A stretch of DNA of 64,000 nt from Macrostomum lignano (taxonomy: Eukaryota). Positions 34,315-63,325 of this stretch are shown here, in pieces. Made by a program: the position numbers and the translations under genes. The DNA lies in contig NIVC01000716.1 in the NCBI GenBank assembly GCA_002269645.1, positions 269,426 to 333,425 on the forward strand, written 5' to 3'. The notes under the pieces were generated by a model. The model was given only the letters and a program-made list of their open reading frames with translations. It made no database searches and was not told where the DNA came from. Every line of letters begins with the position of its first letter. Position 1 is the first letter of the stretch.

Positions 34315-34344
34315 TTTTTAACTAAAAATAAAATAAAATAAGAA

Positions 34345-35490: not shown

Positions 35491-35506
35491 ATTTCTATTT
35501 AAAAAG

Positions 35507-36886: not shown

Positions 36887-36901
36887 TTTTTTATTTAAAA
36901 A

Positions 36902-37636: not shown

Positions 37637-37672
37637 TTTTATAATTTTTTTTATTTTTTTCTAGGGAAAAAA

Positions 37673-38385: not shown

Positions 38386-38389
38386 ACCC

Positions 38390-38791: not shown

Positions 38792-38836
38792 TTTTTATGT
38801 CATTTTTTATGAGGTTTATTAAACTTTCTATTAAAC

Positions 38837-42685: not shown

Positions 42686-42809
42686 TTTTTTCTCCAAAAT
42701 AAAAAAAAATTTTGAGGGTGACCACCCTGATAGAAAAGTTGAACTGTTTCTACATCCTATAAGTAGCGCTAGGTTTAAGAAGCTGGATAAAGTGGGGTTT
42801 TAAACCTCA

Positions 42810-43256
42810 TCACATGCGCATTATTGTAAACCCAGCATTGTGCAGTGTCATGATGGCTTTGACAATGTCAGACTTGCTTACAGAATTTTCATGCTCACAA
42901 TCATCACGATCGGGGCAGCCCTCTCCTGCCTTAATTGTTATACCTTTGTCTCTTGCAATCTTTTGCAATTCCAGCTGGTGGGCTCTATCATTCCCAGCTT
43001 TAACAGCAGTTGCTACACCTCCAGCTACACCACCTGCGGCACTTACAGCGCCTGCAATGATCGGAATAAGAGCTGCTAATGGTAGGATTCCTCCTGACTT
43101 TTCATCTGTGATGCTGTGTCTTTGCTCATTACACTGAACTATTTGCTGCACGGGATCGATTTTTACTTTGGCACCTTTAATTGATATAAGACCTGGTTTC
43201 TTTGATTCAATGATTTTATTGAGTTTATTGATGGTTCTGGTTTCAATCTTTGTCAT
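42810..43256 (-). CDS. pX(mu)-like hydrophobic core protein
   Basis: SGGILPLAALIPIIAG segment. Confidence 0.6.
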   Translation of the reverse strand: MTKIETRTINKLNKIIESKKPGLISIKGAKVKIDPVQQIVQCNEQRHSITDEKSGGILPLAALIPIIAGAVSAAGGVAGGVATAVKAGNDRAHQLELQKIARDKGITIKAGEGCPDRDDCEHENSVSKSDIVKAIMTLHNAGFTIMRM

Positions 43257-43272
43257 TTTTTATTTTAATATT

Positions 43273-44280
43273 TTAATTAATTTCTGTGTCAGCCGGTATC
43301 ACTAGGAGTTCAGCTCTAGTGAATGACCGTGTGGGGGATTTAGGGTTAAAGGCCTGAGATAAAAAGTAATATTCTCCAGAGTCGGAGGTGAAATGTCTGT
43401 CTATTTTATGTACATCAAGGCTGAAGTATGGATCTGTAGCTCTTCTTTTGGTGTCTTTCTCTAGCTCTCCAGGTAGATATAAAAAGCGTAGAAACTCAGA
43501 GTTTGTCAGTATGTATGGTGATTCAACTCCTGGAAGCTTAGGGTAGTTTGAGGTGTGTTTTGTGTTGTGTGTTCTATGAGATGACTTAAGTTCGACAGTG
43601 TCTTGTTTAATTGCATGGGATGGTTTCAATCCAGTCATGCGCGTGACTTCATTGTTCAGTTGTTCTATAACAGTGGGGAGGCGGTCTGTCCATTTTAAAT
43701 AGTACTGACCACTTTTTAGTTTCAGCTCTTCAGCTGTCTGCTTAGTGAATAGCCTCTTGGCTAGAGTTAGATTGAATCTTTCCACAAAAGCCTGGTCTCT
43801 GTGCAAGTTTGTTCTGCCATAGCGTATTTCCGTATTATGCTTTTGTAGGAGACTTCTTACTGCCCCATAGAATTCCTTACCCTGATCGGCCATGAACATT
43901 TCTGGATAGGTTAGAGGAGAGGTTTCATAGATCTCTTGCAGTGCGCTGGCAACAACCTCTGACTTCTTCGTCTTGAGTGGGCGAGCTTCCTTATATCTGG
44001 AGGCAACGTCTGTAATTGTGAGAGCATACTTGTAGCCCGAGTCATTGGGGAGAAACAGAAGATCTGCTTGGTGCGCCTCATTAGGTTTATAAATACTGAA
44101 ATGGGGCCTTTCAAATTTTACTGGTGGGAAATAGACTTGGTAGACTGCTTGCTTAGAGAGCCACTTTTCTACTTTAGCTTTTGGTTCCTTACTTAGTTCT
44201 GTGAGTTTACTAACGGAATTTTTGCCTACAAAGAATCCTTTGTCGCTGTAGTAGAGTTTTTTAAGTTTCTGATCTGTCAT
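43273..44280 (-). CDS. Retroviral-type (rve) integrase
   Basis: D-D-E: QADLL, MADQGKEF, VERFN; intact 335-aa ORF. Confidence 0.95.
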   Translation of the reverse strand: MTDQKLKKLYYSDKGFFVGKNSVSKLTELSKEPKAKVEKWLSKQAVYQVYFPPVKFERPHFSIYKPNEAHQADLLFLPNDSGYKYALTITDVASRYKEARPLKTKKSEVVASALQEIYETSPLTYPEMFMADQGKEFYGAVRSLLQKHNTEIRYGRTNLHRDQAFVERFNLTLAKRLFTKQTAEELKLKSGQYYLKWTDRLPTVIEQLNNEVTRMTGLKPSHAIKQDTVELKSSHRTHNTKHTSNYPKLPGVESPYILTNSEFLRFLYLPGELEKDTKRRATDPYFSLDVHKIDRHFTSDSGEYYFLSQAFNPKSPTRSFTRAELLVIPADTEIN

Positions 44281-44310
44281 TTATTTAAAAAGAAAATTTT
44301 AAATAAAATA

Positions 44311-44799
44311 ATGCAGCGCTCTGGTGGTAAAATAGATTCACATGGACTGATAGAAAAGCTTCCTCATCCAAACAAAGGCTGGACACTTCCCGGCTATAAA
44401 TATTTCGGGCCTTTGAATCCACTTGAAATACAGTTAGATAAAAACAATAATCCACATCCTGGGCATGAGCCTGTGAACGAGCTAGACTCTGTCTGCATGT
44501 GGCACGACGTTAAGTATAGAGATTTTCCAGAGGAGAAGAATCGCTGGGACAAAGAAATGCTCAGGAGACTCGACAATATGGGGATTTCAAGCGGGTGGAA
44601 GGAATCGATCGCTCGGAAATTAGTCAAGGCGGTTATTTTTGGTAAGAAAAAGCTGGGGTTGGGGGTCGGCGGTGAGGGCGGGTGCATAGGGAGAGGGGGC
44701 GGGTGCACGGGGTGCTCGGGAACAGGGTTTATTTTGTGTGCTCCAAACGAGGAACTAGGCAGACTGCTGAAAGATATGGGGGTAGAGAGAGACGCTTGA
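44311..44799 (+). CDS. Parvovirus-like PLA2 domain protein (intron-less)
   Basis: PGYKYFGPLN, PVNELD, WHD. Confidence 0.85.
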   Translation: MQRSGGKIDSHGLIEKLPHPNKGWTLPGYKYFGPLNPLEIQLDKNNNPHPGHEPVNELDSVCMWHDVKYRDFPEEKNRWDKEMLRRLDNMGISSGWKESIARKLVKAVIFGKKKLGLGVGGEGGCIGRGGGCTGCSGTGFILCAPNEELGRLLKDMGVERDA

Positions 44800-45003
44800 G
44801 TCGGGAAGGATTAAAAAAAAGACTCATCGATATTAAATTTTAATAAGTGAAGAGCATGGTTAAATATTTTATTTTATGTTAATAAACAAAAAAAACATTA
44901 ATACAAAGTTGTTCAAAGTTACATATAATAATTTCCTTAGTTAATTCATCCAGTTATTATTACATTGAAAACACTACGAGTAGGCTTAGCTTCGAAAAAA
45001 ATT

Positions 45004-46852: not shown

Positions 46853-47255
46853 TTTAAAGTCTTTGGGATCTGGTTTCGCGTTGCAAATTGAATGTGGGGA
46901 GAAGAATGCAGATTATTTTCTGATTGTTTCGAAGATGCTATGGGTGGATGTCTGTGTCAGTGAGCATAACAGGTGTTAGTGGACACCTGTTATGCTCTGA
47001 TTCTGTCAGGGATAATAATGGATGGATTTAATAGGATTATGTTCGAAGTTTTCGGAGCAAGTGCGACCCCTCCCCTTTATTTCACGATTCTGTCGGGGAT
47101 AATATGGATGGATTTAATGGGATTATGGAGGAGGTTTTGTGAGCAGGTGCGACCCCCCTTTTTTCTGATTCTATCAGGGATAATATGGATGGATTTAATG
47201 GGATTATGGAGGAGGTGAAAAATTTTGTCCCAGAAGCCCCCTCATGCATTCTACT
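46853..47255 (-). repeat. Right TIR of Polinton-2
   Basis: Inverse of 31445-31846, ending GCATTCTACT. Confidence 0.93.
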
Positions 47256-49329
47256 CCCACCATATTCATGTGTCTCTGTGAAGACATTTGAATCTAGACA
47301 AATCAGTTGCCAAATTTTCTTAAACTGCAGAGTAACTAGAGCGTGCCACCTGGATGCCTGTGGCCAGACTATCCAGGAGATCTTGCTCATCACTGGGCAA
47401 AAGTGTGAGCGGACTGTTAAGCGCTACTTATCGAGGCGTCGTGATCGCAGTTTGTATAGGGCATCTCTGGCTGTGGATCAGGCGCTGAATCATACAGTTT
47501 CCGAAACTAATGTCATTAAGATTGTTAAGCTAGCTCGTCCAAAATCCAATCACAATAAGCGAGGCTACGATGGAGGAATGTGCGGATGTTTATCAAGAGC
47601 CTGTCCAGACCGACGGTGCACTACGTGTTCAGGCTGCTCCGTCTGCTCTCTCTCTCTGGGTCGTATGTAGTCCAAGAGTGTTTTCTCAATGTCCGCAAAC
47701 GACAGGTCGGCTACAAGTCGTGGGGACACGAGATCTTGCAATTTTTCAAGTGCAGTCAGACCGCAGCAAGCTAGGAAATTGTCGGCTAGGAAAAGCTAGG
47801 AAAAAATCTAGAAAACACGGACTCTACTCCGCCCCATAGGTAGCCGACATGAGGAAGCGAATATAAATAGCGAGCGCCCGCAAGGGGGGGGGGACACGCT
47901 CTCCAACCCACCCCCACGGCCGACCCAAACCCCCAGCAAATCACAGCCGCAGCGAATCACAGCGCAGGGCGAGAGAAATAATCAGCAAACAAGCCCGGCT
48001 TAAGCCACCGGCTGCGGCATACGCACGAAAAAAATTAGATGCGAAAAAGGGTGACTCTGTGTGGGCAGGGTGTAGTTGCACCACAAAATTGCACGCCACA
48101 ACAATAAGAAGGCACTTTTGAGGCCATAGACAAATTAATGGTGATCCGAGAGGATGGGTGCCTAATTAATCTCGGCAAACCAGCGTTTTACATGTAGAAC
48201 AATGGCGCTCGCCAGACAATAGTTGTCACGCACTGGGACCGGTGATTCTTTGGATTGTTATGCTGCTTGACAATCCTACAAACAATGCATTGTATATAGT
48301 AACGCATTGTTCTGCACAAAAATGTGAATAATGATCGTCAAATTGCTAGACAATGAGTTTTTTGTCTTGGTGGCAATTTTGTGAGATGTGATATATGTAC
48401 TGTAGAAATGAAAAGACCGATGGTCCGCCAAACTATTTTGGAGCTGAGGCTCAAGCGAGACGCTAACAAAACGAAAAGCGTAAACCGTACACAGGGCTAA
48501 AAGCTCTCTCGATGATATATATATTGCAGTCAGTCAGAATCAGCCAGCGTGGAGGGGGGTGGGTGAGATGGGCCTGGGCTAAATCGGCGTACATAGAAAA
48601 TTGAATAATAAACACGTACGTACATTAAATCACGCAGTGGAATTGGAAAGAAAATCAATGCTACTAATCTACCTCCCAAACATACCCCCACCTTAGCATG
48701 ACAATGACAAAAACTATTCGAGGGATGAAACAATAAAAACGAATACGGTATTAGGAAAATATTCGAAAACGATGCGTGATGCAAAATCAAACTCAAAAAG
48801 CCAAAAAGCAACGTTGCATGAAAAATAATGGCGACATTGTGACGGGTAGAAAATTAGAGCTAAAGACGATAAGTACGCAGATCGTAGATACAATCGAAAA
48901 TTTTGCAAAAGTGCGTCAGCTATCAAGACAGATTTCCAAATTAAATACGAAAGAAAATTACCGCCACCAGCAACCGCAACTGAAGCAAAAACTGAAACAA
49001 AAATTGTAAGCATTGGGCTATCAAAAGGTCGTTACTAGTGCAAAAACGATGGAACTTCTAAGCGCGGAAAATAAAGCAATATTAAGTAGAGCTCAAAGAA
49101 TGCAAACATCGCTCGTAAAAAACTCAAAAAACACAAAAGATAAACTTGCCGACAAATTCACTAAACCGTAACGACTGCTGTTCAGCAAAATTCACGCAAG
49201 AAAATAAATAGCTAAATAATGAATGTTAATCGCGTTGAACACTGAAAACGAAAATTGGGTTAAGACGGGTGAAGCCTTATTCATATTTTAAGTATAGCAG
49301 CCAGCTACTTCGCTGAAAAAATATACGCG

Positions 49330-49896
49330 CTGCATGCATCTACAATCTCTTCCTAACTCGGCATCTTGCATTCGTCTTCGTTACTACGAAAAGTACAACA
49401 TGGCGACGAGGAAAATTAAAGTCGCCGCGGAACGATACTGCAGTCACCAAATCTTCATCCCGATGTCTTCCGGACTCGACTTCCGACTGGGGGAGATGCC
49501 GCTGTGCTACCCCGATGTCGAACAGTATTTCAAGCGCCTCGGTTTTTACATTAGCGCAACGGAAAAGAATGACCAGAGCAAAGCCGTTCTACTTGCTACT
49601 TGTGGAGATGCCGCATTTTCACTGATTGAAACAGTTGTGCAGCAGAAATCGCTCCTTCGGAATTCGGTGTAGTGTTCTTCGAAAGGCGGAATGATATCAA
49701 CACCTTCTCACATTCGGAACCTATGTCATTACTGTTCTGCTTCAGAGTCACTAGGATCCTGCTAGGATCCTGCAAGAGTGGAAGCTCTATCCAACTTGTC
49801 AGAGCCAAAAGACCGGGATCAATTGAGAAGTGCTATATGCACCTTAAGACACTACGGGATTTTTTGTCGGAACTTCTCTATGATCGCCAAGCCGCT
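49330..49896 (+). mobile_element. Degenerate Gypsy element (LTR end, PBS, gag and pol scraps)
   Basis: ...ACAACA followed by PBS-like TGGCGACGAGG at 49401; gag VEQYFKRL...VLLATCG; RT/RNase H scrap FCRNFSMIAKPL, cut at 49896. Confidence 0.65.
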
Positions 49897-50417
49897 AGTA
49901 GTAGTATGTTATAAGGGGTTGCGCCACACTTTATTGCTCGGGCGCATTGCGCGCCAGCTCGCTGGATGACTCAACCCCTTATAACATACTACTACTACCA
50001 GGAGGTCATGGGTTCATGTGGGGTGTGATAAATATAAAAATATATAAATATACATATATCTGTGACTGAGGGTGTTGAGGGTGAGGGCATGTGGGGGCAT
50101 TGGCCTGTGGTATATTTCTCAGAACACCGATTTTTCAGAATTTTTATACTTTTAAAAAGGGGGGTGCCCTCGCCCTCATGCCCTCACTCATTTTGAAAAT
50201 CACTAAAAATAAGTGAAAAATGACTAAAACAGGTGAAAATGGTCTGAAAACAGCGATTTTTGTGATTTTCAAAAATTTTGAAAAAGTGCAATTTTCACGA
50301 TTCCAGCTCTAAAACCATAAGAAAAGTTGGATCCTCGGGTCAATTTAATGCAATTTCAGGTATATACAATATGAAAGTGTCATCTAATTTAACGATAGTA
50401 AATTTTATATATATAAA

Positions 50418-52640
50418 ATGGCCTTCAGTAAACCATTATTTCTAGGAAATGCTTTAGATATTCAGTCAGCTATAACAAAACTACCACCCATCTTCGCCAC
50501 TTGAAAATATCCTGGCGAATTTCATATTCCAGGGTATTCTTTTGCAGGTTACGTAGTGGCCTGAGTGAGGAAGTCAATGTCCTTGCTAGTCATCAAATAA
50601 GCACTTGTTAACTTTTCTAAAGTAAAAATGGAGCAAACAATTCGAAAAATCCTTCTGAAACCAATTGATGATAAGGTTGGGCATGATCAAATTCTTCATG
50701 ATCTTTTTCAAGAAGAGTTAATAATTTCACACAAGATTAAAGTTATTCAAATGAGACTAGGCAGACTATATGAAATTTTGGATTCGAGAAGGTAAAAAAG
50801 ATAGACCTGGTTCACGTTGAGCGAAAGATTGCATTAGAGCTTAAATCTTCTGATAACACGGACAATTCATCAAGTCGTGAAAGGAATTATCAGAAACTAT
50901 TAGACTATAAAAATTCTTATCCCACCTATCAGTTGTATTATGTATGCATCAATAATACTACAAAGGAACCTAAGAATATTTTACTAGACAATGGAATCAC
51001 CCTTATAACAGGAGAATTTGCATTGAAATTTCTTTATGGTGATCAATACAAAAAAATTATAACCAACATTAAACAAGTGCTTAGTGATTGGCGACACCTT
51101 CAAATTGCGGGAACTCCGTCCGATTCTAGTACGTCAATAACAGCCTCAAGTACCACTTCAGTTGAGAAATCTTCTGAAGGAACACAGGTAATTCCTGTTC
51201 CCAATCGGACTTCGTCCGCGAACCTATGGTTCGATGGTAACAAGCTTGAGGACATGGTGGAAATCCGCAGCCAAGCTCCTAAGTCCGAACGAAGTTGACA
51301 AGGATATGGAGAAGGTTCAGAGACTTAATGGGGGTGGGGCTGAAGGATCTGGTCAATCCTGATGAAGCCTTAAGATAAAGTCCAGCCTCTTTCGAAAGAT
51401 TGAGGAACAACTGCCGGGTACAAATTTAGACAAGAGACTCAATCCAATTACAGACCGGCCTCGGTATGACAGTCTACCAATTAACCCAATCGATTGGACT
51501 GCTTACTATCATGACAAAAACTATAGAGATGCTGAAAACACTTCTTCAAATCCAGAGGAAGCTCTAGCAAAGAAGCATATAGCTGATGAAAAAATGATAG
51601 CTGATTTAGATGCTATTCCAACCAGTGACTTGTCTGTGAAAGAGAGACTCATTCGAAATCTAGTAAAGCGTATTATCAAGGCTAAAGTTCGGTTTGGATT
51701 AGGCATTCATACTCACAACCCCAACAATTGTATAGACTGTCTAACAATTTATGGTAAGGGTCTTAGCTATGAAGATGCAGTAAAATTGCATAAAGAATAT
51801 CGAAAGCCAAGAGTATTTAGAAAAATGATTCACTATGCAAAAGACACAATTTGGCATGCAGATATCATTATCCTACCGCCCGAAAGAGGTTACAAATATG
51901 CTCTAACTATCATAGATGGTTTTACACGTTACGCCTGGGCAGTTCCTTTGAAAACAAAGACGGGAGCGGACGTTGCAGAAGCTTTCCAAAAAGTATTTAA
52001 GGAATCAGGAAGACGATCAGAGAGACTTTGTGTAGATGAAGGCAAGGAGTTTTATAATCAGCATATGTACAAGCTATACTCGTTTTCAAAAGACAACATT
52101 AGAAAGAAGGATGAAAGGGGTGAATATATTAACAAGATGTTTTCAATTTATGGCGAGTCCAAGAATGCAATGATTGAGAGGTTCAATCGTACTCTCACAA
52201 ATAAACTCTGGTTTGAATATGATCTACAGGGTAATCAGAAGTGGCTCCACAAATTGCCAGCTATTATTGAAAAATACAACAACACAATCCATTCTGAGAT
52301 TCTGATAACTCCTTCAGAAGCATCTAAACATCCTGAGCGAGTACCAAAGCCAACTTTCGAGTATTCAAATGAGAAACCAAACTTCAAAGTAGGTGACAAA
52401 GTTCATATCTATAGATATAAGGAGCACTTTGAAAAGGGTCGAAGAGGATATTGGAAAATTTCAGAAGTGTTTAGGATAAAGAAAATAGTTTACTCCAATC
52501 CCATAACCTACATTATTGAGGATGAGAATGGAGAAGAAATCATTGGATCATTTTACAAATCCCAGCTTCTACCAGCAAATTTTTCAACTAAAAATGAGCG
52601 CCTATCGAACAAACTGCAAACGGGCGAAAGGTCAGATTGA
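50418..52640 (+). CDS. PLA2-integrase fusion gene interrupted by a group I intron (exons 50418-50549 and 51414-52640; in-frame TGA at 50502)
   Basis: Exon joining gives HIPGYSFAG|PGTNLDKRL...PINPID...YYHD, then in-frame rve core (HADII, VDEGKEF, IERFNRTL). Confidence 0.85.
50550..51413 (+). ncRNA. Group I intron, subgroup IC1-like ribozyme (864 nt)
   Basis: 5' exon ends in U and pairs with IGS GCCUG (50559-63). P AAATTGCGGGAA 51102-13, Q AATCCGCAGC 51262-71, R GTTCAGAGACTTAAT 51315-29, S AAGATAAAGTCC 51372-83. Terminal G at 51413. Confidence 0.93.
50628..51298 (+). pseudogene. Intron-encoded PD-(D/E)XK restriction-endonuclease-like protein (one frameshift at ~50775-50790)
   Basis: QMRLGRLYE...IDLVHVERKIALELKSSDNTDNSSS...YQKL. 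Looped out by an 11-bp stem (50599-609 with 51072-82). Confidence 0.7.
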
Positions 52641-53016
52641 AACGTCTGATTCACAACTACTAGCTGATAAAGAGGGTGAAGGAATTGGTGATATGATCAG
52701 TGGTGTCACAAACTTTTTATCAAATCATGGAAGTAAAATTGTGAGTGGAGCTGATGCAATAGGTAAAACAGCTACCACAGCGAAGAACATATTCGATGCG
52801 AAGAAATCATACAGTGACATGTCTAAAGCAGGTGAGGATCTGGAATATATTAGAAAGAAACGTAGAGATAAAGAAGCAAAGAAAAGAATGGAAGAAGAGC
52901 AACAGATAGCTTCTCAATCAAATAAGGCTATTCAAGATATTGTTAAAAAGGCTCTAGGAACAGCAGAACAGTCTCAAGTGTCTTTGAGACAAGGCAATGG
53001 TTTGAAGAAATTCTGA
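52594..53016 (+). CDS. Small amphipathic virion-type protein
   Basis: GEGIGDMISGVTNFLSNHGSKI; positional and motif homolog of 35507. Confidence 0.6.
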   Translation: MSAYRTNCKRAKGQIETSDSQLLADKEGEGIGDMISGVTNFLSNHGSKIVSGADAIGKTATTAKNIFDAKKSYSDMSKAGEDLEYIRKKRRDKEAKKRMEEEQQIASQSNKAIQDIVKKALGTAEQSQVSLRQGNGLKKF

Positions 53017-53024
53017 CCTTAAAA

Positions 53025-53294
53025 ATGAGCGAGAAAAACACTGAAGCAAGACTCAATCGATATGTTCGAGAGGGAAAACCAAGATATGTTACTGTAAATA
53101 AGCAAAAGAAATATCTTTCTAAAGAGAAGATTCGAAAACTGCAAGAGAAACAGAAAGAACATGAAGGTGGAATAATTCCTCTATTAGGCTTACTACTAGC
53201 AATTTTGGGTGGTATCGGAGCAGCCTCAGGAGTTGGTACAATGATTGCAAAAGTGTTAATACAGCCAACAATGCTAAACATAATAAGACAATAG
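53025..53294 (+). CDS. pX(mu)-like protein, possibly frameshifted near its end
   Basis: Basic N-terminus followed by GGIIPLLGLLLAILGGIGAASG. Confidence 0.55.
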   Translation: MSEKNTEARLNRYVREGKPRYVTVNKQKKYLSKEKIRKLQEKQKEHEGGIIPLLGLLLAILGGIGAASGVGTMIAKVLIQPTMLNIIRQ

Positions 53295-53421
53295 AAGTCG
53301 AACAAGTACCCAGCGAAGCAGTCAAGTGGCTGCTAAAGACGTTTAAAGTTGAAAAGGAGAAACAGGGTAATGGGATAATTCTTAGACCTCATGAAGCTTA
53401 GTTGAAATTTCTCTTATAAAA

Positions 53422-54727
53422 ATGGAGAACAAAAAGAATATACTGAGCATATATGAGGACAAAACTTTTAGCTTTTTCAAAAAGAAAGAAGACTATATTA
53501 AGATTTCTCCAACTCCAGGTAGCACTAATAATCTCAATGTTGCAGGAGGTCAAATAGTTCATGAAGTCAATTCAACAGAGTCATACATTCTCATGTCAGA
53601 GGCATTCGGTTGTATAAAATACTCAATAACACAACGAGATAACACCGACTTGAATACGAACATTACTCTAGAACATAATTGGCCTATGAGACTTTTCTCT
53701 CAACTCATTGTTGACATTGGAGGAACAAAGAAAGTCTATAATGATCCTGGAGAGTATGACACAATCTTAAAGTCCGTAATGTACTCAAAATTAATGAATG
53801 AAGTTGGAGAAGCATACGGATGGATTCCAGACACTGGAGATGCTGGGACTGTTTCTGATATACCTCTAGCAAACAACGCAGATGCTGAAGCTGTGAGAAC
53901 TGCAGCAATCGCTATGAAAAATAGACTCAATAAGAAGGATTCGAATACTGGATACATTAGGAGGCTTGAAAATTATAACAATGTCACTAATGCTCCAAAC
54001 AGAGGTGGAACAATCAAACTATCATTAACACCTCTCATTGGTGTGAAACGATGCTGAAATTTTCTTTGGAGCTGCCGGGACGGAAGCTAAGTTAACTATT
54101 AATAGCTTTGAGATTTGGATCCCTGCTATTACTTTGTCACCCAGTGCTGAAGCAGCTTTTCTAAAATCACTCAACAAGGACATTACAGTATCATTTCCAG
54201 AGAGGGTAACGGTTCCACCACAACTCATTCAAGGAAGTCCATATACATGGAACATAGCCAACATCTCCAATATGCCACTTGCAATCTTTGTAGCTTTCAA
54301 ATATGACGTAAACAACCCATCATATATAGTTAATGATCACAAGTATGTGTCTTACAAAACGGGAGCAAATGCAGTGAAAATAACCCAGCTTCAAGTCAGA
54401 TTAAATCAGGTGATGTATCCGAATGATTATGTTGAAATTGATCCAGTAGCTCAAGACATTCACAGAGCGTATGAAATGTACGAAGACATCTGCAGCCGTT
54501 TCGGTGTAACTCCTCCATTCAATAAACAAGACTTTCTAACCATCTATCCAATCTTTTGCTTTGATCTAACAGCTCAAGATGAGTTTCTGGTCAAGAGTGG
54601 AGTGAATATTCAATTATTTATCAAGAAGTCAACAAATGTTGAGCTGACTGCTTTTGCACTAATTCTTGAACAAACAAAGAATGTAATAAAAGTTACCAGT
54701 GAATATCAAATGACCCGCGTCGAATAA
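53422..54727 (+). pseudogene. Major capsid protein, frameshift/deletion at ~54040
   Basis: KISP..S.NNLN..GQIV, ITLEHNWPMRLFSQ, NDPGEYDTI, YPIFCFDL. Confidence 0.85.
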
Positions 54728-54748
54728 GGTCATTTTTTCTTTTTTTAA

Positions 54749-55522
54749 ATGCCCAAAGTAAAATTTCAGCATGATCCTATTTTCCCTAATCCTCTTTTAT
54801 GTTGTATTATCGGCGCTACAAATACGGGTAAAACATATTTACTATTCCATATTCTTACAAGTCCTGAAAAACTAGTTGACTTTAATGAGTTAGTTTTATA
54901 TGTTCCCAGAGCATCTCAAATGGATCCAGAGTATCAGTTTCTAAAATATGGCTTTGAAAATGGTCTCCCACCTTCTCTTATCAACTCACTCTATCATGTC
55001 TACCAGGTGAGTGAGGATGCATCTCCTGAAGATATTAGACATATTTGTCGAGAGGCAGCCAACCCTGGTCGAGTGCAAAGCACATCAGAAAATTCAGAAG
55101 TAATAGAGAAAATTCCTGTCACTCTTTACCATACTCCAAATGAAGAAATTTTTCATAATGGACTAAAGACATGTGTGATATTGGACGATGTTTTGGGAGA
55201 GGCTAATCAAACATTTCAGGAAAGTCTGTTTCAGAGAGGCAGGCATGGAAACTGTTGTGGTTTTTATCTAGCTCAAAATTTTACCAAACTAGATCGCAAT
55301 ACTGTCAGGGAGAATACGACATGTTACATAATCTTTAAACAAAAAGATACAAACTTGAATCACATTGCTAGAAATATAGAAACGAATTATGAACCCGCTA
55401 TATTCAAGGCTAAATGTAGAGAGGCTTGGAAAAAGAAGTATGGCTATATCTATATAAATACAAGAGCTGATGAGGATGAGCAAGATTTGTATAAGGATGT
55501 TCTAACTAAAATCCCATTGTAA
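54749..55522 (+). CDS. A32/FtsK-like packaging ATPase
   Basis: GATNTGKT, VILDD, RGRHGN. Confidence 0.93.
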   Translation: MPKVKFQHDPIFPNPLLCCIIGATNTGKTYLLFHILTSPEKLVDFNELVLYVPRASQMDPEYQFLKYGFENGLPPSLINSLYHVYQVSEDASPEDIRHICREAANPGRVQSTSENSEVIEKIPVTLYHTPNEEIFHNGLKTCVILDDVLGEANQTFQESLFQRGRHGNCCGFYLAQNFTKLDRNTVRENTTCYIIFKQKDTNLNHIARNIETNYEPAIFKAKCREAWKKKYGYIYINTRADEDEQDLYKDVLTKIPL

Positions 55523-55524
55523 AA

Positions 55525-56255
55525 ATGACTAATGAATATATAAGAGAACTCATTAATTTAGCAAAGCAGCGAGAAACGTACAAATCCAGAAATGATGCTC
55601 AACGCTATTTGAAAATTGGAGAAGAGAGTTTATATGCAAGAGTGGCTCCATTAGCTCAAAAACCTGTCACAGAAAAGCTCGATGAATTTATTGATGTCAA
55701 TGCCAACCTTGTTGATAAACTTCAGAATCAAAAAGTTCCAGTTCCGCAATCAAGTACACCAAAAGGACGATTTGAACCTCTGGAAGTATTTGACAAAATA
55801 ATTGAAGAAATTGGAAAGATTCCAATAACTCAAAGACCAGCGCCTAGTATACGAATTCAAAAAACTGATGCTGGATATATATTTGGATCATCTGTAATAG
55901 ATGTTGAATTCCATGAACAAGGTCGAGACATCATTGTCAACGAATTTCGAATGCCATTTTCTGAAGATCTTGAAGAGTTGTTCAAAATGCCTAAAGTAAC
56001 TGAAAATGGTGAAGAGCTGAAGCAATTCAAGATGCAAACATTGCAGGATTATGTTAACCTCATTGAACATTGTAAAAATCCAGCGGCCAAATCAAGTGGG
56101 ATTATAAGCAAGCAGTAAGGATATTGAAAGATAATCCACCAGGATATCGAGTAAAACCGGGATCTGGACTCAGTGAAAGAGTGTTGACATTACTAGCCGC
56201 AAAAGCAGAGGGACATAACAATGTTGATAAAGAGCTAGCAGAATTACTTGCTTAA
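55525..56255 (+). pseudogene. Homolog of the Gln-rich Polinton protein, frameshift near 56100
   Basis: Shifted tail GSGLSERVLTLLAAKAEGHNNVDKEL matches the C-terminal motif of 21803 and 34345. Confidence 0.6.
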
Positions 56256-56257
56256 AA

Positions 56258-57049
56258 ATGGAAAAAGAAATAGAAAAAGTCAACATCCTCTTGAGTAAAA
56301 AGTTTCAACGCACATTTGACTTCTTTTCAATTAAAAACCCATTTCGACAAACTCTAGGCACTCCTATAAATTTGTATGAAGATCGAGAATACGAAGCTGG
56401 TATAAAAAAGTTTGCAGTCTTTGATGCTATTAACAATATTGAAGGAGGCAATAATGAGTTGCGATACTCGAGGGATAGTGTTAGAACATGGAAAAAGTTA
56501 AAGATTCAAGCAGGGTCATGGGAAGTTAAAAGTCTGTCAAGCGAGATTCAAAGATTGCTAACAGCTGCAAATGATTGGAAAGAGGGGGCTATTGTTTTCA
56601 GTGCAAGCCTAGACACGCGTAGAGTTAAGTTACGGTTAGCCACAGATTATCAAGTTGATTTCAGGGATGCACATTCCAATAACTTTAGAAGACTGTTGGG
56701 ATTCAATTCGGAAGTGTATTTGAAACCATTTGAGAGAGCTCCAAATCCAGCTCGGATAGACGGAGCTAGAAGTGCGATCATGGTTCGTTGTCTAAATATC
56801 AAATGGGGGTTTATCACTGATCCAGCTAATGGAAATCATTTAATTGATAAGCAAATACTTCTTTCAATTCCATCGTTCTCTGTCCCAATGGGAAGTAAAA
56901 TTATTCAAGAGCCCGCAAATCCTGTGTACATACCACTAACTACAAACATGTTGAGCACATTCGACTTTGTCATCGAAGATGAGTCTGGTGTTCTATACGA
57001 CTTTGATGGCGAGGAAATATTTATAAATCTTCACATACGACAAAAATGA
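56258..57049 (+). CDS. Minor capsid (penton) protein
   Basis: LGTPINL, NNIEGGNNELRY, GSWEV, YDFDGEEIFINL. Confidence 0.85.
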   Translation: MEKEIEKVNILLSKKFQRTFDFFSIKNPFRQTLGTPINLYEDREYEAGIKKFAVFDAINNIEGGNNELRYSRDSVRTWKKLKIQAGSWEVKSLSSEIQRLLTAANDWKEGAIVFSASLDTRRVKLRLATDYQVDFRDAHSNNFRRLLGFNSEVYLKPFERAPNPARIDGARSAIMVRCLNIKWGFITDPANGNHLIDKQILLSIPSFSVPMGSKIIQEPANPVYIPLTTNMLSTFDFVIEDESGVLYDFDGEEIFINLHIRQK

Positions 57050-57477
57050 GCGAAGCTGAGACATGGAATGCATTTAAACAAAAGTTTGGGACTGACACTA
57101 CGACTAATATTGATCTGATAAATTGGGCAAAATATCTCAAGTTAAAACCATTTCGCTATGCCATGAGAGATGACATTGTTGACTTACCACAGTATGGTTA
57201 CTTTATGACAAATATTCACACTTCGAAAGAACGGGGTATACATCATTCAGCTATATTTTCAGCTCCTGATAAGGTTTATTTTTTTGATTCCTATGCACTA
57301 CCGCCCACACTGGAAATTATGGAAAAGTTTAATCACACAAAGAATAGAATATGTGGAGACATGGAAGAACAAATTCAAACTTTTGATAAGAAATTTTGTG
57401 GTCAAATGTCGCTGTACTTTTTACACCGAATCGATAAAGGAGATAGCTATAATGAAATTTTGCAGCAATTAAAATGA
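57046..57477 (+). CDS. Adenain-like cysteine protease
   Basis: GIHHSA, YFFDSY, QIQ...KFCG. Confidence 0.9.
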   Translation: MSEAETWNAFKQKFGTDTTTNIDLINWAKYLKLKPFRYAMRDDIVDLPQYGYFMTNIHTSKERGIHHSAIFSAPDKVYFFDSYALPPTLEIMEKFNHTKNRICGDMEEQIQTFDKKFCGQMSLYFLHRIDKGDSYNEILQQLK

Positions 57478-58883
57478 GTTACAAGAATACTGCCAATCAA
57501 TTTGGTTACTCGTCAAATTCAAATGATATAGCACCTGGAATAACAATAGCGTTAGCTGATGATCGATACATCAATGAAAATGAAGGATATAAGAGAGAGG
57601 AAATAGATAATTTATTGTTAGCAAAGAGAAATGTTTCAGACTCTTATTCAAAGGAAGATAGTGACGCAATGAATATCACCATGCTACAATTAATTGACGA
57701 TGCTCATGGGCGCGTAAACAATGTCTACACAAAAACCGAAACTGACACTAAGATGTATTCTAAAACCGAAATTGACACTAAGATGTATTCTAAAACTGAG
57801 ATTGACACTAAGATGTATTCTAAAACTGAGATTGACACTTTGTTAGCAGAAAGGCAAGGTACTGCGGGAGGTACAGAGAGTTCGAAATTAGTCAATATTC
57901 TTTCATTACTGACTTCAAACGCTTCCCATCCTGACATGAAAGTGACCGCTTCTCATAACTCTTCAGCAGCATATCATGTTGCAGATTCAAACCCAGCTTC
58001 AGAATGGAGCAGTGTAGATGACTCAGACAAGTGGATACGAGTTCAATTTCTGAAAAGAGCTAGGAAAGTTGTAGAGATAAAGTTGGAAGGAGAGGTGTGG
58101 CCTGGTTGGTCTGTTAGTGTGAGCCTAAATGGAACAAACTGGACACCTGTTGAACAAAGTGCACCCATTGAACTACGAAGAGGCAATGCACATCTTAGGA
58201 AAAAAATACCTAATCCCTCATATTATTTTCATTATTCTCTTAATTTTTCTGGTTCCGTAAAGCTTACAAAAGTTGAATTACTTGAGAGACAAACAGTGGT
58301 TAATGATTTAGTGTGGCCTATAGATAGACTTCAAGCTGTACCAAAGCTATACGTAGACAATGCACTTGAATCAGTGGAGCTGCGACTAAGGCGGGGACTA
58401 GGTTTCAAATCTTATACAGGATATATTCCCCCACTAGCAACACGTCAAAACTATAGAGAAAGGGGTTTCAATGTAGCGTCATCAGGAGCATTTGAAACGT
58501 CAGATAATTGGGGTTATGTAGTATCTAATTCAGAATGGGCATCGAGGAATGAACCCAATTCTTACATTGAAGTACAACTTCCCGAGTCCATTCGAATTTG
58601 GAAATTCGGGTTAAAAGGAACCAAAGCAGTGGGTAGTGAAATTATAAAAAATCAACCAAAAATTTTTATTCTGAAAGGAAGCAATAACAACAGAGACTTT
58701 AAGAATATTTTTTCTACCGAAAACTCTGGTTTAGTTCCTGGAGTGATGAAGTATTTCGAAGTAGCTTCCACCGAAAAATTCTCTGTTTATAGAGTGCATA
58801 TTAATTCAACCACTGAAGGATCAACTGTTCTTATAGTTTCAGGCTTTCAACTTTATCCGATTTTAGACATAATCGCCACATAA
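57474..58883 (+). CDS. Fibre/spike-like protein with YSKTEID repeats and two discoidin (F5/8-like) domains
   Basis: DDRYIN anchor, 10-aa repeats at 57725-57840, and two ASS...EW.S...WI.V...F.L.GS..G..W-type modules. Confidence 0.65.
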   Translation: MSYKNTANQFGYSSNSNDIAPGITIALADDRYINENEGYKREEIDNLLLAKRNVSDSYSKEDSDAMNITMLQLIDDAHGRVNNVYTKTETDTKMYSKTEIDTKMYSKTEIDTKMYSKTEIDTLLAERQGTAGGTESSKLVNILSLLTSNASHPDMKVTASHNSSAAYHVADSNPASEWSSVDDSDKWIRVQFLKRARKVVEIKLEGEVWPGWSVSVSLNGTNWTPVEQSAPIELRRGNAHLRKKIPNPSYYFHYSLNFSGSVKLTKVELLERQTVVNDLVWPIDRLQAVPKLYVDNALESVELRLRRGLGFKSYTGYIPPLATRQNYRERGFNVASSGAFETSDNWGYVVSNSEWASRNEPNSYIEVQLPESIRIWKFGLKGTKAVGSEIIKNQPKIFILKGSNNNRDFKNIFSTENSGLVPGVMKYFEVASTEKFSVYRVHINSTTEGSTVLIVSGFQLYPILDIIAT

Positions 58884-58884
58884 A

Positions 58885-59655
58885 AATGAATGAAAAAATG
58901 AACACATCTATCCTGTGGTTGAGCTGCATGAAGCAGATTTGAGGGAGCGGGACTATTTCAATCAGAGAAAGGGTGAAATCAAAGGCAGTATTGAATGCAT
59001 TACTAAAGATCTTACAATTTATAGCAAAAAAGTAAACAAGTACAAACGACAAAATAGCAGGATAAATTGGATCAACATTGTGACAGGAAATGTAAGTCTC
59101 TTGGCTGCTACAGGAATTGGCATAGCAACATCGATACTGACATTGAATCCCTTAGTTATTGGAGTAGTAATCGGGGCAATGAGTGGTTTTGAAGCTGTAA
59201 AATCCACGTCGTTGTTTGCAACTGTGAAAATTCATTGCCAAAAGCAGAAGGCAAAATACATTTTTCTCAGAGATCTGGCAAATCAATACAGAGAGAGATT
59301 GAGATTGTATATTTACTCCCAAAAAGCAGTTGATGATTATAGATTAACTCTTGAAGAGGTTCAAGCAGCTGCTGCAATTTATTCAGAATACAGAGAGAAA
59401 AGAGACCAATTGTTAGACGCCTGTGTTGCGCCTGAAGAAGTTAACCATTCGGAAGTCGTTGATAAAATCCTCAAAGAGAGTAGACTTGGTAATTCAGCGA
59501 AGGAAAAAATTAAAAAGGAACTTCTGGAGAAAGATCTGAGAGAAAAATTAGGTCTAGCTGATAAGCCAAAAGAGTACTCGGCAACACTCAATCTTCAATC
59601 AAATGCTCCAAGTGCACCCCCCCTATGCTTGAGTCTGTTTAATTTTTTTTCTTAA
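58885..59655 (+). CDS. Conserved membrane-hairpin protein
   Basis: Basic helix, two hydrophobic helices, AVDDYRLTLEE; homolog of 37673. Confidence 0.65.
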
Positions 59656-59657
59656 AA

Positions 59658-62120
59658 ATGGAAAGGAAAATACCAGCGGCCTCTTATGAATTTGATCTCG
59701 ACTCCGTTGAAGAAATTCGCGGTTTAATCTCCCCAATTCTTTCCGAATATTTGATGGCTAGAGATTCAATAAAATACAGAATTTCCTTTGTCGCAGAATT
59801 TTATAAAGGAACTACCGACAGTTGGATTGAGTTCCAATATCATTCAAAGTATCGAACTTTGTTAAATCTTCTCCAAGTGGAAACTAGTATAGAAAGTACA
59901 ATTCAGGATGTTCTGGATGAATTCGATGGATGGAAGGATAGTTTTAATGAAAGGGGATCAGGATATTATTTTGTTAAGTTAGTAAAGATTGTGTTGAAAG
60001 TTGTTGGCATTAATCAGTTGAAAGGAGGAACTTATATTCCAATTACAATTAAATCAAACGCATTAGTAAATGTTAAGAACACTACAGACAATAGGTGCTT
60101 TCTCTGGTCTATTTTAGCAAAGCTCCATCCTGTGAAGGAACATAGATATAGAGTTGGTAAGTATACACAGTATATAAATGAAATAAACTTAGGAGACGTT
60201 GAATTTCCAGTGGACATTCGAGATATCTCTGAGATTGAAAAGTTGAACAGTCTTCATATAAATGTGTTTGGATTAAGGGATATAAATACTAAAGAGTCAA
60301 TATATTCTATTCGTCTGACAGAAGATTACGACAACCCCAATGTTATTGATTTACTACTTGTCAAAAATTATTATTGTTTAATAACAGACTTGTGTTTATT
60401 CCTCACGTCCCAAAATTACAACAGGGTTTTTCTTTGTCGAAAGTGTCTTCAAGTTAAATACTCCCAGGATGCACTGGATAATCATAAAGCAATCTGTACT
60501 GACTTCAAAGTGTCAATTGAAGTTCCAAAGATTGATAAGAGGATATTAAAGTTTAAAAACTACCACATAAGTGTAAGAAAACCATTTGTGTTTTATGCAA
60601 TATTAGATTATGTAACGATGGATGATAAATCACTAGAGCTATCACAATGGACACTTTTTACTAGTTCCGACTATGAGGACATTATAAAATCAGATATTAT
60701 TTCAAATACTACAGTGGAATCATTCGTTGAAACCGTAATCAAAAAGTTTGAGCATATAAAAAATGAAATGGATAGATATAAACATCCAAGTTTAAGTGAT
60801 CTCGATGAGACTGATTACAAAGCGGCAGAACAATGTTTTCTCTGCTCAAGGCCATTTGTAAATAGTAAAAAAATTCGAGAGCATAATCACTACAATGGTA
60901 AATATCGCGGCGCAGCATGTCAATCATGTAATACCAAGGATGGCAAGGCGAATCAAACGGTACCGTTGTTTCTCCTGAATGAATCTGGAAAAGATATAAA
61001 CTATTTGATAGTTCCATTAACACGAATAAAGAATACAGCGTATAAATTGGATTTCATTTCTAAAACATCGGAAGACCATGTTGCAATTAAGTGAGGGAAT
61101 TATACCAGTGGTGTTGTGTTTTTAGATGGATCTAGGTTTTTGGAACCACCATTTACACTCTCTGAAGAAGAAATAAAATATTTGCCACCCAGTGATACAA
61201 CGGCAGTAATTAGAAAGATTTACTCATTTGTCAACGCTTTTGAGAAGTTTCGATCAACATTTTTGAAATATTTCAAGATAGATCCTGCGTATTGCTTTTC
61301 CCTTTCTGGATTATCGTGGGCATGTGGGTTGAAATATACCAATGTTGAGCTGGAATTACTTGGTGATAAAGATATGATATCCGTGGTAGAAAGTGGTATT
61401 CGCGGCGGTTTCTCTGGAGTTCTTGGAGATCGATATAAAAAAATGAACAATAAGTATTTAGAAAATTATGACAGCAATTCTGAATCGTCGTACATGTTAT
61501 AATTGGACAAGAATAATTTATATGGTGAAGCAATGATGAAAAATCTACCTGTGCGAGATTTCAAGTTTGAAAATGATCTAGAGTATCACAAGAATATTCC
61601 TAATGACAGGGGTTGTTTTCTTGAAGTTGACCTTCAATATACAGAGGAATGTAAGAAAGCTACAAGTAAATATCCACTGGCTCCTGAGAAACGAACAACT
61701 AGATTTGAGGATTTATCTGACATACAGAAGCAATACCTCGAAGTCGAAAAGAAAAAGTTTGTTCAATCCAAGTTGATGTTGACATTTTACAACAGTGATG
61801 CAATATCTCAGTGTTTATTCTCAGTGATTATAATTCTCAGTGATTACTCAGGATGTTTATGAGGATCTTGAAAAAATTAAAGAACACTTAGACACATCGG
61901 ATTATCCAAGAGAGCATCCACTATACTCCGAGACGAACAAGAAAGTCATTGGAAAGTTGAAAGATGAAATGAATGGCTCAATAATTTCCGAAGCTGTATT
62001 CCTGCGGTCAAAGGAGTATGCTTTCACTACAGTTTCAGGGGAGTGTGTTACGATCAAGGGGGTTGATAAAAGCAGTACAAATATAAAGTTTGAAACATTT
62101 AAAAACATACTATTGACAGA
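59658..62120 (+). pseudogene. pPolB of Polinton-3, fragmented and 3'-truncated
   Basis: ERGSGY, CFLWSIL, EHNHYNGKYRGAACQSCN, GIRGGFS, NNLYGEAM, VIGKLKDE, LRSKEY. Confidence 0.92.
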
Positions 62121-62963: not shown

Positions 62964-63325
62964 AGTAGAAGGCGTGAGGGGGCTTTTGGGACAAAATTTT
63001 TCACATCCTCCATAATCCCATTAAATCCATCTATATTATCCCCGACAGAATCAGAAAAAAGGGGGGTCGCACTCGCTCACAAAACATCCTCCATAATCCC
63101 ATTAAATCCATCCATATTATCCCTGACAGAATCAGAGCATAACAGGTGTCCTACTGTTATGCTCTGAGGGTTTATGCTCTGAGCATAATCCACTAACATC
63201 CACCCATAGCATCTTCGAAACAATCAGAAAAGAATCTGCATTCTTCTCCCCACATTCAATCCGCAATGTGCTACCACATCCCAAAGACTTTAAATCATCA
63301 GAGCAGGGTCCTTACCCTTTGAAAA
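62964..63325 (+). repeat. Left TIR of a fourth Polinton (Polinton-1/2 family)
   Basis: AGTAGAAGGCGTGAGGGGGCTTTTGGGAC and the same subrepeats as 8384 and 31445; not followed by the family's genes within the window. Confidence 0.88.

Follow-up and report, generated by a model that had tools for sequence, protein, structure and literature searches.

The window analysed here, a stretch of 64,000 nucleotides of Macrostomum lignano DNA, contains an integrated Polinton-like virus of ~16 kb with terminal inverted repeats at both ends (left, 47018–47255; right, 62964–63136), and this element houses the intron and the nuclease ORF described below. The repeats pair through 170-nt arms, the left arm being 94% complementary to 62964–63133. 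The remaining element genes, assigned with Pfam, occupy 53422–62994 and include those for a truncated double-jelly-roll capsid protein (54134–54727), an A32-type ATPase (54749–55522), a discoidin-domain protein (57474–58883), an EndoVII-domain protein (59658–61094) and, on the minus strand, a PriCT primase (62110–62994). Of the 11 element ORFs that were run against Pfam none has a methyltransferase domain, and tblastn found no methyltransferase match in the related loci L001–L005 or L021 either.

The intron splits a phospholipase A2 (PLA2)/integrase gene on the plus strand. Exon 1 (50419–50549), recognized from its translation (MAFSKPLFLG...KYPGEFHIPGYSFAG) and by comparison with exon 1 of L002, possesses an in-frame TGA at 50502–50504 where L002 has GGT. 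Exon 2 (51414–52640) completes the PLA2-like motif (PGTNLDKRL...HD) and encodes the integrase core, with Pfam matches to Phospholip_A2_4 (1.2e-3) and rve (3.4e-10). Sequence comparison indicates that the predicted spliced product regains its frame, reading YSFAG|PGTNLDKRL as in intron-less homologues, and of 46 integrase homologues that bear the motif, almost all as uninterrupted ORFs, 33 have G-PGT at the junction position. A second integrase in the same window (43273–44280, minus strand) is without the PLA2 motif and was for that reason dismissed as a further target. When used as a query against IMG/VR the window integrase gave no match, and an integrase alignment found one distant locus; a genome scan with a seven-sequence alignment gave three loci.

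The intervening sequence is an 864-nt group I intron (50550–51413, plus strand), which matches Rfam RF00028 over 51025–51404, scoring 91 bits where the gathering cutoff is 50. P1 (50545–50563) is formed by exon CAGGU (50545–50549) and the internal guide GCCUG (50559–50563), and the sequence places a U50549–G50559 wobble at the 5' splice site. In L001, L003 and L004 a C:G pair of P1 is replaced by U:A, exon TAGGT facing guide GCCTA, which is a compensatory change. The Rfam alignment assigns P3–P9 and the omega-G (51413) to a ribozyme core at 51083–51413. On the basis of this core, the U–G pair, the omega-G and the restored reading frame, self-splicing at 50549/51414 is predicted.

The original prediction put an ORF with an AAAAATG start inside the loop of an extended P2.1 that is closed by a perfect stem, and so it proves: the 5' arm AAGCACTTGTT (50599–50609) and the 3' arm AACAAGTGCTT (51072–51082) are exact reverse complements on either side of the ORF, the latter also coding for KQVLS, with which the nuclease domain ends. 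Since this helix is placed between P2 and P3, it is P2.1 by position. With the window copy counted, six related copies were compared, and each has a closing helix of 11–18 bp; its sequence takes several different, covarying forms.

The ORF itself is broken. From the ATG at 50628 frame 1 has 55 codons before a TAA at 50793–50795, and the N-terminal part (residues 1–50, 50628–50776), which includes Glu49 (GAA, 50772–50774), is 50–53% identical to residues 1–49/54 of homologues P0005 and P0001. Frame 3 is open from ~50774 to the TGA at 51296–51298 and reads ...FGFEKVKKIDLVHVERKIALELKSSDNTDNSSSRERNYQKLL...; its catalytic and recognition part (50777–51094), supported by the PF09553 match, invariant columns and the AvaII alignment, holds Asp60 (50804–50806), Glu71-Leu-Lys73 (50837–50845) and the recognition loop NTDNSSS (50855–50875). 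As had been proposed, there is no stop ahead of the ribozyme core, and a C-terminal tail (51095–51298) runs through P3–P6 to the TGA; homologous ORFs likewise enter the core, but with differing stop positions.

A single frameshift in a T-run near 50777 had also been proposed. The frame does change there, but through a deletion at 50775–50779 of 5 codons plus 1 nt, visible in the DNA alignment with L002, L001 and L021 and as a gap in the protein alignment. At the DNA level 16 nt are missing relative to L002 and 13 nt relative to L001 and L021, at a cost of 4–5 residues (LAEKY) which are kept in every intact homologue. The 16 missing nucleotides rule out a one-base slip in TTTT and, together with the position of AAAUUUU outside the zero-frame register, programmed -1 frameshifting. 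The deletion makes the window copy a pseudogene, and because the integrase exon contains a stop codon as well, this copy is a fossil. The search for intact versions of the ORF in other copies was successful in L001, L002 and L021. Endogenous copies display four independent lesions, and among genome-integrated elements broken copies outnumber intact ones.

Pfam assigns the ORF to PF09553 [RE_Eco47II] with 27.5 bits (E 2.8e-6), 1.6 bits over the gathering threshold of 25.9 for the window copy, aligning residues 52–152 with positions 86–186 of the 202-position profile. The match lies wholly inside the unrepaired frame-3 segment. RE_Eco47II also matches 17 of 18 clade members (best 2.6e-8), so that the suggested likeness to Eco47II/Sau96I holds, as does the absence of LAGLIDADG, GIY-YIG, HNH and His-Cys motifs: the Pfam scan at E≤10 reported RE_Eco47II alone, with no match to those families or to PF11645. 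The description of the protein as not a classical homing endonuclease is correct for the four classical families, but a PD-(D/E)XK precedent exists in I-Ssp6803I, a member of another family. The ORF has 17 homologues with E-values down to 4e-53 and is no chance reading frame; several are intact across the lesion, and the intact ORFs lie in diverged copies at 46–64% identity. The homologue alignment shows little or no variation at E49, D60 and E71-L-K73. Only a chance FliW match resulted when the repaired protein was scanned against NCBIfam, phmmer with the single protein against PDB sequences returned chance matches, and in tblastn neither plasmids nor phages yielded a match to the nuclease domain. 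Eco47II and Sau96I are restriction endonucleases which recognise GGNCC. The two are 33% identical (PMC3045609). Descent of the ORF from this Type IIP family is supported by the sequence comparisons.

The predicted structure is in agreement. The AlphaFold model (pLDDT 91.4) has an alpha-beta-beta-beta-alpha-beta PD-(D/E)XK core, and Foldseek, as recommended in the original prediction, returned nucleases. The top rank is held by the DdmD nuclease domain (E 4.5e-4, TMq 0.41), while the best match with substantial coverage, and the highest coverage overall, is that to EcoO109I, second by E-value (6.6e-4, probability 1.0, TMq 0.64). A Foldseek search of viral predicted structures gave no convincing match. 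AvaII was the sole PDB sequence match, weak by itself (E 0.36); hhalign nevertheless pairs the family with AvaII at 86.7% probability, with E49/D60/K73 falling on E123/D147/K163, which bears out the proposed D...ExK centre. In the same alignment NTDNSSS coincides with AvaII N167–S173, a loop which contacts G:C pairs (PMC7337904), and AvaII E115/N116 correspond to a 4-residue gap in the intron nuclease family.

All seven copies have a 5' exon that ends in GGT, and the four that retain both exons invariably give GGT|CCN when spliced in silico, the codons for the Gly-Pro of the YxGPGT PLA2 motif. In the window the junction reads TTTGCAGGT|intron|CCGGGTACA. Intron-less alleles have GGGCC at this position, for example TTTGCAGGGCCAGGTACA in L102, whose integrase is 75% identical to that of L002, and thus intron-plus and intron-minus alleles of one site both exist. 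The contention that the intron splits a GGNCC site is therefore upheld; the predicted target spans the junction and is missing from the intron-containing allele. In each of the intron-less elements L102, L103 and L104 the Gly-Pro site is the sole GGNCC of the element. L103 retains it despite possessing a free-standing nuclease paralogue; such paralogues also occur in the related small viruses L009 and L010.

GGNCC is otherwise scarce in these elements. Six related elements, statistically non-independent, were pooled (56 kb) and contain 3 GGNCC where 30.3 were expected, the lowest observed/expected ratio among all 256 XXNYY words, and two of the three are the Gly-Pro site of intron-less elements. 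GGWCC (1 versus 20.7 expected) and GGSCC (2 versus 10.1, both at the junction) are depleted alike, so that any GGNCC is apparently selected against; a GGWCC-only specificity with GGGCC as an escape allele was rejected on this ground. The flanks of the junction vary by allele (A-GGTCC-G, A-GGGCC-A, T-GGGCC-A) without fitting RGGNCCY, which was discarded as the specificity. A 5-bp site is favoured by the homology and by the genome-wide avoidance of GGNCC whatever its central base. L001, in which the ORF is intact, has one GGACC. In the window a 14.7-kb stretch (48571–63306) is free of GGNCC, and 50370–63136 has 0 where 13.3 were expected. Three sites cluster at 48236–48570, inside inverted repeats. 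Neither the host flanks (109 versus 138 expected) nor the other Polinton of the window (17 versus 22) is depleted, and an effect of host or regional composition was therefore rejected. The avoidance extends to protein: the window element encodes 0 Gly-Pro dipeptides against 7.5 expected, and 7 Pro-Gly.

Among distant homologues the nuclease adjoins a convergent C5 methyltransferase in nearly every locus of more than 5 kb. Pairs of Eco47II-type nuclease and C5 methyltransferase are common in giant-virus contigs, one of which carries an NCLDV capsid gene, and one pair was found in a Muribaculaceae MAG, the single MAG by which bacterial family members were sampled. Depletion is not a trait of the whole protein family, as many distant giant-virus loci are undepleted; nearly all of these have an adjacent C5 methyltransferase. 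The giant-virus contig L006, with a solitary homologue, has 3 GGNCC where 18.5 were expected.

We consider it probable that the ORF once encoded a GGNCC homing endonuclease of Eco47II/Sau96I descent and has since decayed, its intron residing in a Polinton-like virus integrase gene; the cleavage specificity, cut positions, expression and homing of the enzyme are what we infer from these comparisons. In intact relatives the intron would splice itself out and restore the integrase message, and the ~160-residue nuclease would act as a dimer, with E49, D60, E71 and K73 as catalytic residues and N77–S83 as the base-reading loop. The enzyme would cut GGNCC, including that of the intron-less integrase allele. 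Since Gly-Pro can be encoded only as GGNCCN that allele would always have a site, and since GGNCC has been purged from the rest of the virus genome it would be the only target. Repair of the cut allele from an intron-bearing copy would copy the intron in, and the resulting allele would be immune because its site is split. Purged genome and split site together would thus allow a 5-bp cutter that has no methyltransferase to act as a homing enzyme specific for one site. Against homing, known homing sites are all much longer than 5 bp, and an enzyme with so short a site would cut the host about every 600 bp; the elements that show the depletion are related; and the GGACC of L001, the three sites at 48236–48570 and the Gly-Pro site kept in L103 beside its paralogue all fit poorly.

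The purge could also have been driven by others. Small viruses that replicate in giant-virus factories might be exposed to a giant-virus restriction-modification (R-M) system of GGNCC specificity, the intron then being kept for splitting the one Gly-Pro GGNCC that could not be recoded, and the nuclease being a passenger or the original means of insertion. The Eco47II-type pairs of giant-virus contigs would supply the enzyme, and as the intron-less L103 and L104 are also purged except for the Gly-Pro site, the purge needs no intron nuclease. This account leaves unexplained why the intron should carry a nuclease of exactly that specificity family and why its ORF should be intact in copies as diverged as 46–64% identity; we regard it as possible but would not favour it. 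It is compatible with homing, and both may be true. Rather doubtful is the idea that the nuclease is mainly a methyltransferase-less restriction weapon against host, helper-virus or competitor DNA, the virus protecting itself by site avoidance, the intron serving as a safe harbour and homing being incidental. Chlorovirus restriction enzymes, by analogy, degrade other DNA. The R-M ancestry and short predicted site agree with such a role, as do the free-standing paralogues of L103, L009 and L010, the solitary homologue of the depleted L006 contig and the predominance of broken copies in integrated elements, a bias to be expected were the expressed nuclease toxic to its host. Yet the sole target in intron-less relatives is the exact site of intron insertion, a signature of homing, and the ORF sits in a peripheral intron loop, where homing endonuclease genes are typically found.

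It is improbable that the true site is longer or different (GGWCC, RGGNCCY or at least ~14 bp at the junction), with GGNCC a by-product of the Gly-Pro codons. Homing endonuclease sites normally are 14–40 bp, and the N-terminal 40 residues of the nuclease family lie outside the Pfam match. I-Ssp6803I, itself a PD-(D/E)XK enzyme, reads a 17-bp site (PMC3424549). Against a longer site stand the parallel depletion of GGWCC and GGSCC, the variable junction flanks and the gap in place of the W-selecting E115/N116 of AvaII. Lastly, the frameshift, the stop in the integrase exon and the truncated capsid gene might suggest that nothing here is functional, the frame having arisen by accident or through faulty assembly of a dead repeat. 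This is extremely unlikely given homologues at 4e-53 whose ORFs are intact, the conservation of the catalytic motif and a fold predicted with confidence; it is refuted for the gene family and holds only for the window copy, which is dead.

Homing enzymes usually have long, tolerant sites and restriction enzymes short, strict ones under the guard of a methyltransferase. Here, we suggest very tentatively, a Type II enzyme has become a homing endonuclease without acquiring a long site, the genome supplying the specificity, and the intron is at the same time a move in an arms race between giant and small viruses, which it may be because the giant-virus R-M pairs share GGNCC specificity. If so, every GGNCC, and hence every Gly-Pro, would have been eliminated except the functionally fixed Gly-Pro of the integrase PLA2 motif, which would be both the homing site and, once split, the last restriction-sensitive site to be removed. 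The small virus would be immune to its helper's enzyme while turning on helper, host or rival a GGNCC cutter that has no methyltransferase, which suggests that GGNCC restriction is a weapon common to giant viruses and the small viruses dependent on them. The loss of Gly-Pro would moreover be a clear example of proteins themselves being shaped by restriction-site avoidance. The evolution of a restriction enzyme into a selfish homing element is a testable model; intact genes (P0001, P0005) exist.

The nuclease resembles Eco47II/Sau96I in passing the family HMM, in its PD-(D/E)XK residues and in the ELK...NTDNSSS block. The R-M enzymes are paired with a methyltransferase, as are the distant homologues, whereas the intron clade has none, is found in a eukaryotic virus within a group I intron, apparently achieves self-protection by site avoidance and the splitting of its last site, and has a nuclease of ~160 residues with a tail read through the ribozyme. 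AvaII (G^GWCC, PDB 6G3B) shares the catalytic E/D/K and has N-T-E-N-S-S-S for NTDNSSS, but its segment G113–N116, which selects the central W, is missing. EcoO109I (RG^GNCCY, PDB 1WTE), the best high-coverage fold among solved structures, has a C-terminal elaboration and flank recognition which the intron nuclease lacks. Identity to both is low, 13–16% over the Foldseek alignments.

To our knowledge I-Ssp6803I, from a cyanobacterial tRNA-fMet group I intron, is the only restriction-fold homing enzyme characterised. It too represents a restriction fold recruited as an intron-encoded homing endonuclease, but it is bacterial and belongs to a different family (PF11645), and the present nuclease derives from a 5-bp Type II family and lies in a eukaryotic virus, inside a gene that codes for protein. 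Group I introns have been described in Polinton-like viruses of Paulinella micropora (n=53), Rhodomonas lacustris (n=44) and Desmodesmus (n=2) (PMC12220804); these are host elements of the same kind, and the discoidin-domain gene typical of the rhizarian ones is present here also. As far as its text and two supplements go, that survey reports Rfam matches only, states the associated protein to be unannotated and makes no mention of Eco47II; assuming that those introns belong to the same intron family, our results offer a possible function for them. The R-M systems of chloroviruses and other giant viruses likewise place a prokaryote-type restriction nuclease in a eukaryotic virus; unlike them, the intron nuclease has no methyltransferase, is carried by an intron, and finds in related genomes a single predicted target, its own insertion site.

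The only Rfam match around 50-52 kb of the window was to the group I intron family (RF00028, 51025-51404, 91 bits against a gathering score of 50). An integrase exon read from the flank (...KYPGEFHIPGYSFAG) stops at 50549 and resumes at 51414 with PGTNLDKRL...PINPIDWTAYYHD..., in which Pfam places an rve core extending to 52640 (rve, 3.4e-10; Phospholip_A2_4, 1.2e-3); the intron limits are therefore 50550-51413 (864 nt). In P1 the guide GCCUG pairs with exon CAGGU, U50549 and G50559 form the splice-site pair, and 51413 is the omega-G. Relatives with exon UAGGU carry the guide GCCUA, a compensatory change in P1.

The interrupted gene belongs to a 16.1-kb Polinton-like virus bounded by terminal inverted repeats (47018-47255 and 62964-63136; 170 nt, 94% complementary, with internal short repeats), whose genes specify integrase, a truncated double-jelly-roll capsid protein, A32 ATPase, discoidin-domain and EndoVII-domain proteins and a PriCT primase. 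Just left of the integrase gene is a G-rich imperfect palindrome, GGGTGTTGAGGGTGAGGGCATG...CATGCCCTCACTC (50066-50199), which gave only sub-threshold miRNA-like matches in Rfam. On the minus strand at 31000-45000 is a second, different Polinton-type element. Its protein-primed PolB (40059-42539) includes an Endonuclease VII domain, either as a fusion or as an interruption, and its rve integrase (43273-44280) has no PLA2 motif. Endonuclease VII domains (PF02945) occur in three large ORFs including this PolB (12298-14946, 59658-61094 and 40059-42539) and may be other mobile nuclease insertions. A Copia-type reverse transcriptase (20194-21168, minus), a DUF3504/tyrosine-recombinase ORF (29289-30113, minus) and another rve fragment (6133-7020) mark the window as a eukaryotic region rich in transposons.

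The original prediction placed a nuclease ORF in the loop of an extended P2.1, and this proved correct. The helix arms AAGCACTTGTT (50599-50609) and AACAAGTGCTT (51072-51082) are exact complements, and all related copies have an equivalent helix of 11-18 bp around the ORF, in several different sequences. The helix is real and, lying between P2 and P3, is P2.1. Its 3' arm doubles as coding sequence for the final residues of the nuclease domain. Frame 1 runs from ATG 50628 through 55 codons to TAA 50793, and frame 3, which includes IDLVHVERKIALELKSSDNTDNSSSRERNYQKLL, is open from about 50774 across P3-P6 to TGA 51296-51298, as originally described. It reads into the ribozyme core in every clade and ends variously in P6, the P8 region or P5 (tails at 51095-51298 in the window, 1259-1477 in the related locus L002 and 3575-3694 in L001). 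Where the tail looks conserved as protein (HLQIAG..., ASSTTS.EK), it reflects conservation of the RNA.

When the repaired 223-residue protein was scanned against Pfam at E<=10, the sole family returned was RE_Eco47II (PF09553; 27.5 bits, gathering score 25.9), and, as had been claimed, no LAGLIDADG, GIY-YIG, HNH or His-Cys domain appeared. The match covers residues 52-152, entirely within the unrepaired frame 3, and the family is matched by 17 of 18 clade members (best 2.6e-8). E49, D60, E71-L-K73, T78-D-N-S-S-S83 and K90 are invariant or nearly so. An AlphaFold model of an intact homologue (P0001, residues 1-161) was confident (pLDDT 91.4, pTM 0.84) and shows a long helix followed by beta-beta-alpha-beta-beta-beta-alpha. 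Foldseek against the PDB gave two matches below E 0.001, the DdmD nuclease domain (4.5e-4, TMq 0.41) and, with the best coverage, EcoO109I (6.6e-4, prob 1.0, TMq 0.64), which cuts RG^GNCCY; other PD-(D/E)XK nucleases followed.

Among PDB sequences the family profile matched, weakly, only AvaII (6G3B), a G^GWCC cutter. By hhalign (86.7% probability, 66 columns, 39% identity) E49, D60 and K73 align with AvaII E123, D147 and K163, and the loop DNTDNSSS with DNTENSSS. In the AvaII-DNA structure loop contacts by N167, T168, N170 and S171 specify the outer and inner G:C pairs, and the central W is selected by E115 and M112 via a metal ion (PMC7337904). Segment G113-N116 of AvaII is absent from the intron nuclease family, a gap that would agree with a free central base. 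Eco47II is 33% identical to its homologue Sau96I, both being assigned to PD-(D/E)XK (PMC3045609, PMC3424549), and the proposed resemblance to these enzymes is borne out by Pfam and by the AvaII and EcoO109I links.

A frameshift had been placed in a T-run near 50777. The frame is indeed broken there, but by a deletion, directly after the catalytic-helix Glu, of 5 codons plus 1 nt: those of 17 metagenomic homologues (46-64% identity, E down to 4e-53) that span the break all have 4-5 additional residues (LAEKY or similar), and in DNA alignments the window is 16 nt short of L002 (13 nt short of L001 and L021). The missing nucleotides and residues rule out both homopolymer slippage and programmed frameshifting. 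Decay affects the rest of the element too: the integrase gene that hosts the intron is a pseudogene in the window, exon 1 having an in-frame TGA (50502-50504) where L002 has GGT (Gly), and the capsid ORF is truncated. Other genome-embedded copies are also damaged: L003 by a frameshift (one extra A), L004 by an in-frame stop and L005 by a frameshift. The search for intact copies succeeded with L001, L002 and L021; the gene is real, and what the window holds is its fossil. In a host genome with about one GGNCC per 600 bp, making a 5-bp cutter would be costly, which agrees with the damage seen in most integrated copies.

Gly codons are GGN and Pro codons CCN, so that a Gly-Pro dipeptide is always encoded by GGNCC. 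All seven intron-containing copies have GGT at the end of the 5' exon, and the four with a 3' exon as well have the junction GGT|CCN; three intron-less elements read GGGCC there. Of 46 integrase homologues bearing the motif, nearly all uninterrupted ORFs, 33 have G-PGT at this position. Intron insertion destroys the GGNCC site, as predicted, and 48571-63306 of the window is free of GGNCC throughout.

Site avoidance provided the strongest independent test. Against a first-order Markov expectation, GGNCC occurred 0 times in 50370-63136 (13.3 expected), and in 51414-62000 it was the most depleted of 16 SSNSS control words. The whole element, TIR to TIR (47018-63136), has 3 (20.4 expected), all within 335 bp (48236-48570) of the GC-richer left arm. 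This arm (47.3-50.0 kb, GC about 0.44) has no recognisable viral gene and may be a nested insertion. L002 and the L003 element have none (4.8 and 3.4 expected), and L103 and L104 one each, in both the Gly-Pro junction site; a single GGACC is present in L001, where the ORF is intact. Six elements pooled (56 kb) gave 3 where 30.3 were expected (P about 4e-10, the counts being not fully independent because the elements are related), and of the 256 XXNYY words none had a lower ratio; GGWCC occurred once (20.7 expected) and GGSCC twice (10.1), both at the junction. Control counts were 109 against 138 expected in host flanks and 17 against 22 in the second, unrelated Polinton. In 51414-62000 and the pooled elements CGNGC (1 against 6.8) and AGNCC/GGNCT (pooled, 77 against 132) were also under-represented; the cause may be pressure from other restriction systems or a relaxed specificity.

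Avoidance extends to the proteins. In the window element's ORFs (50370-63136) Gly-Pro is absent (7.5 expected) and Pro-Gly normal (7); L002 and L003 (9700-20235) show the same pattern, and in L103 and L104 the junction is the only Gly-Pro. Restriction-site avoidance can thus be read from the amino-acid sequences themselves.

A profile search over 1.84 billion representative proteins found 321 relatives, 193 at E<1e-10. Relatives with 27-44% identity come from giant-virus contigs and GVMAGs, where they neighbour an intein-bearing RNA polymerase, MutS or an NCLDV capsid gene. In nearly every locus above 5 kb a convergent C5 cytosine methyltransferase adjoins the nuclease. This holds for almost all of the distant loci (L011-L100; L105, 932-3516, with an NCLDV capsid gene though labelled an archaeal MAG; L106, 1703-3416), and one locus is a Muribaculaceae MAG with the same pair. 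Such classical R-M pairs give the family assignment a functional anchor. A methyltransferase is lacking in the intron clade. No C5 methyltransferase lies within 4 kb of a solitary homologue on a giant-virus contig (L006, 4001-4579), which has 3 GGNCC (18.5 expected): the same strategy of no methylase and no sites. Related small viruses (L103, 8135-8722, minus; L009 and L010, 4001-4621) have free-standing Eco47II-like paralogues whose recognition loops diverge (KTDNYNSK, QTDNHNSK). L103 retains its GGGCC Gly-Pro site; the L009 integrase has G-AQT in place of G-PGT and therefore no GGNCC site.

A homing mechanism, for which we infer expression, cleavage and transfer alike, is the best reading. 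The restriction-family nuclease housed in the intron loop would cut GGNCC, and in genomes of the lineage the sole such site would be the one that intron-less alleles cannot avoid, at Gly-Pro of the PLA2 motif. Repair off an intron-bearing genome would copy the intron into the cut allele, and the intron-split site would be immune. Eco47II-type R-M pairs seem common in giant viruses, since the distant homologues almost always adjoin a methyltransferase; giant-virus GGNCC R-M systems may impose the purge, the intron protecting the last site. Alternatively, the nuclease may serve chiefly as a weapon that works without a methyltransferase and attacks the DNA of host, helper or rivals. Both explanations are compatible with homing.

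A survey of Polinton-like viruses, notably those of Paulinella micropora, counted group I introns and left their proteins unannotated; Eco47II is mentioned neither in its text nor in two of its supplements (PMC12220804). A full-text literature search for RE_Eco47II returned nothing, and for Eco47II with intron or homing only general PD-(D/E)XK surveys. We regard the ORF as a putative intron homing endonuclease gene drawn from a 5-bp Type IIP family, its specificity supplied by the genome and not by the protein. Restriction-fold homing endonucleases have, to our knowledge, one characterised precedent, I-Ssp6803I. That enzyme is bacterial, recognises a 17-bp site (PMC3424549) and belongs to a different family from the intron nuclease.
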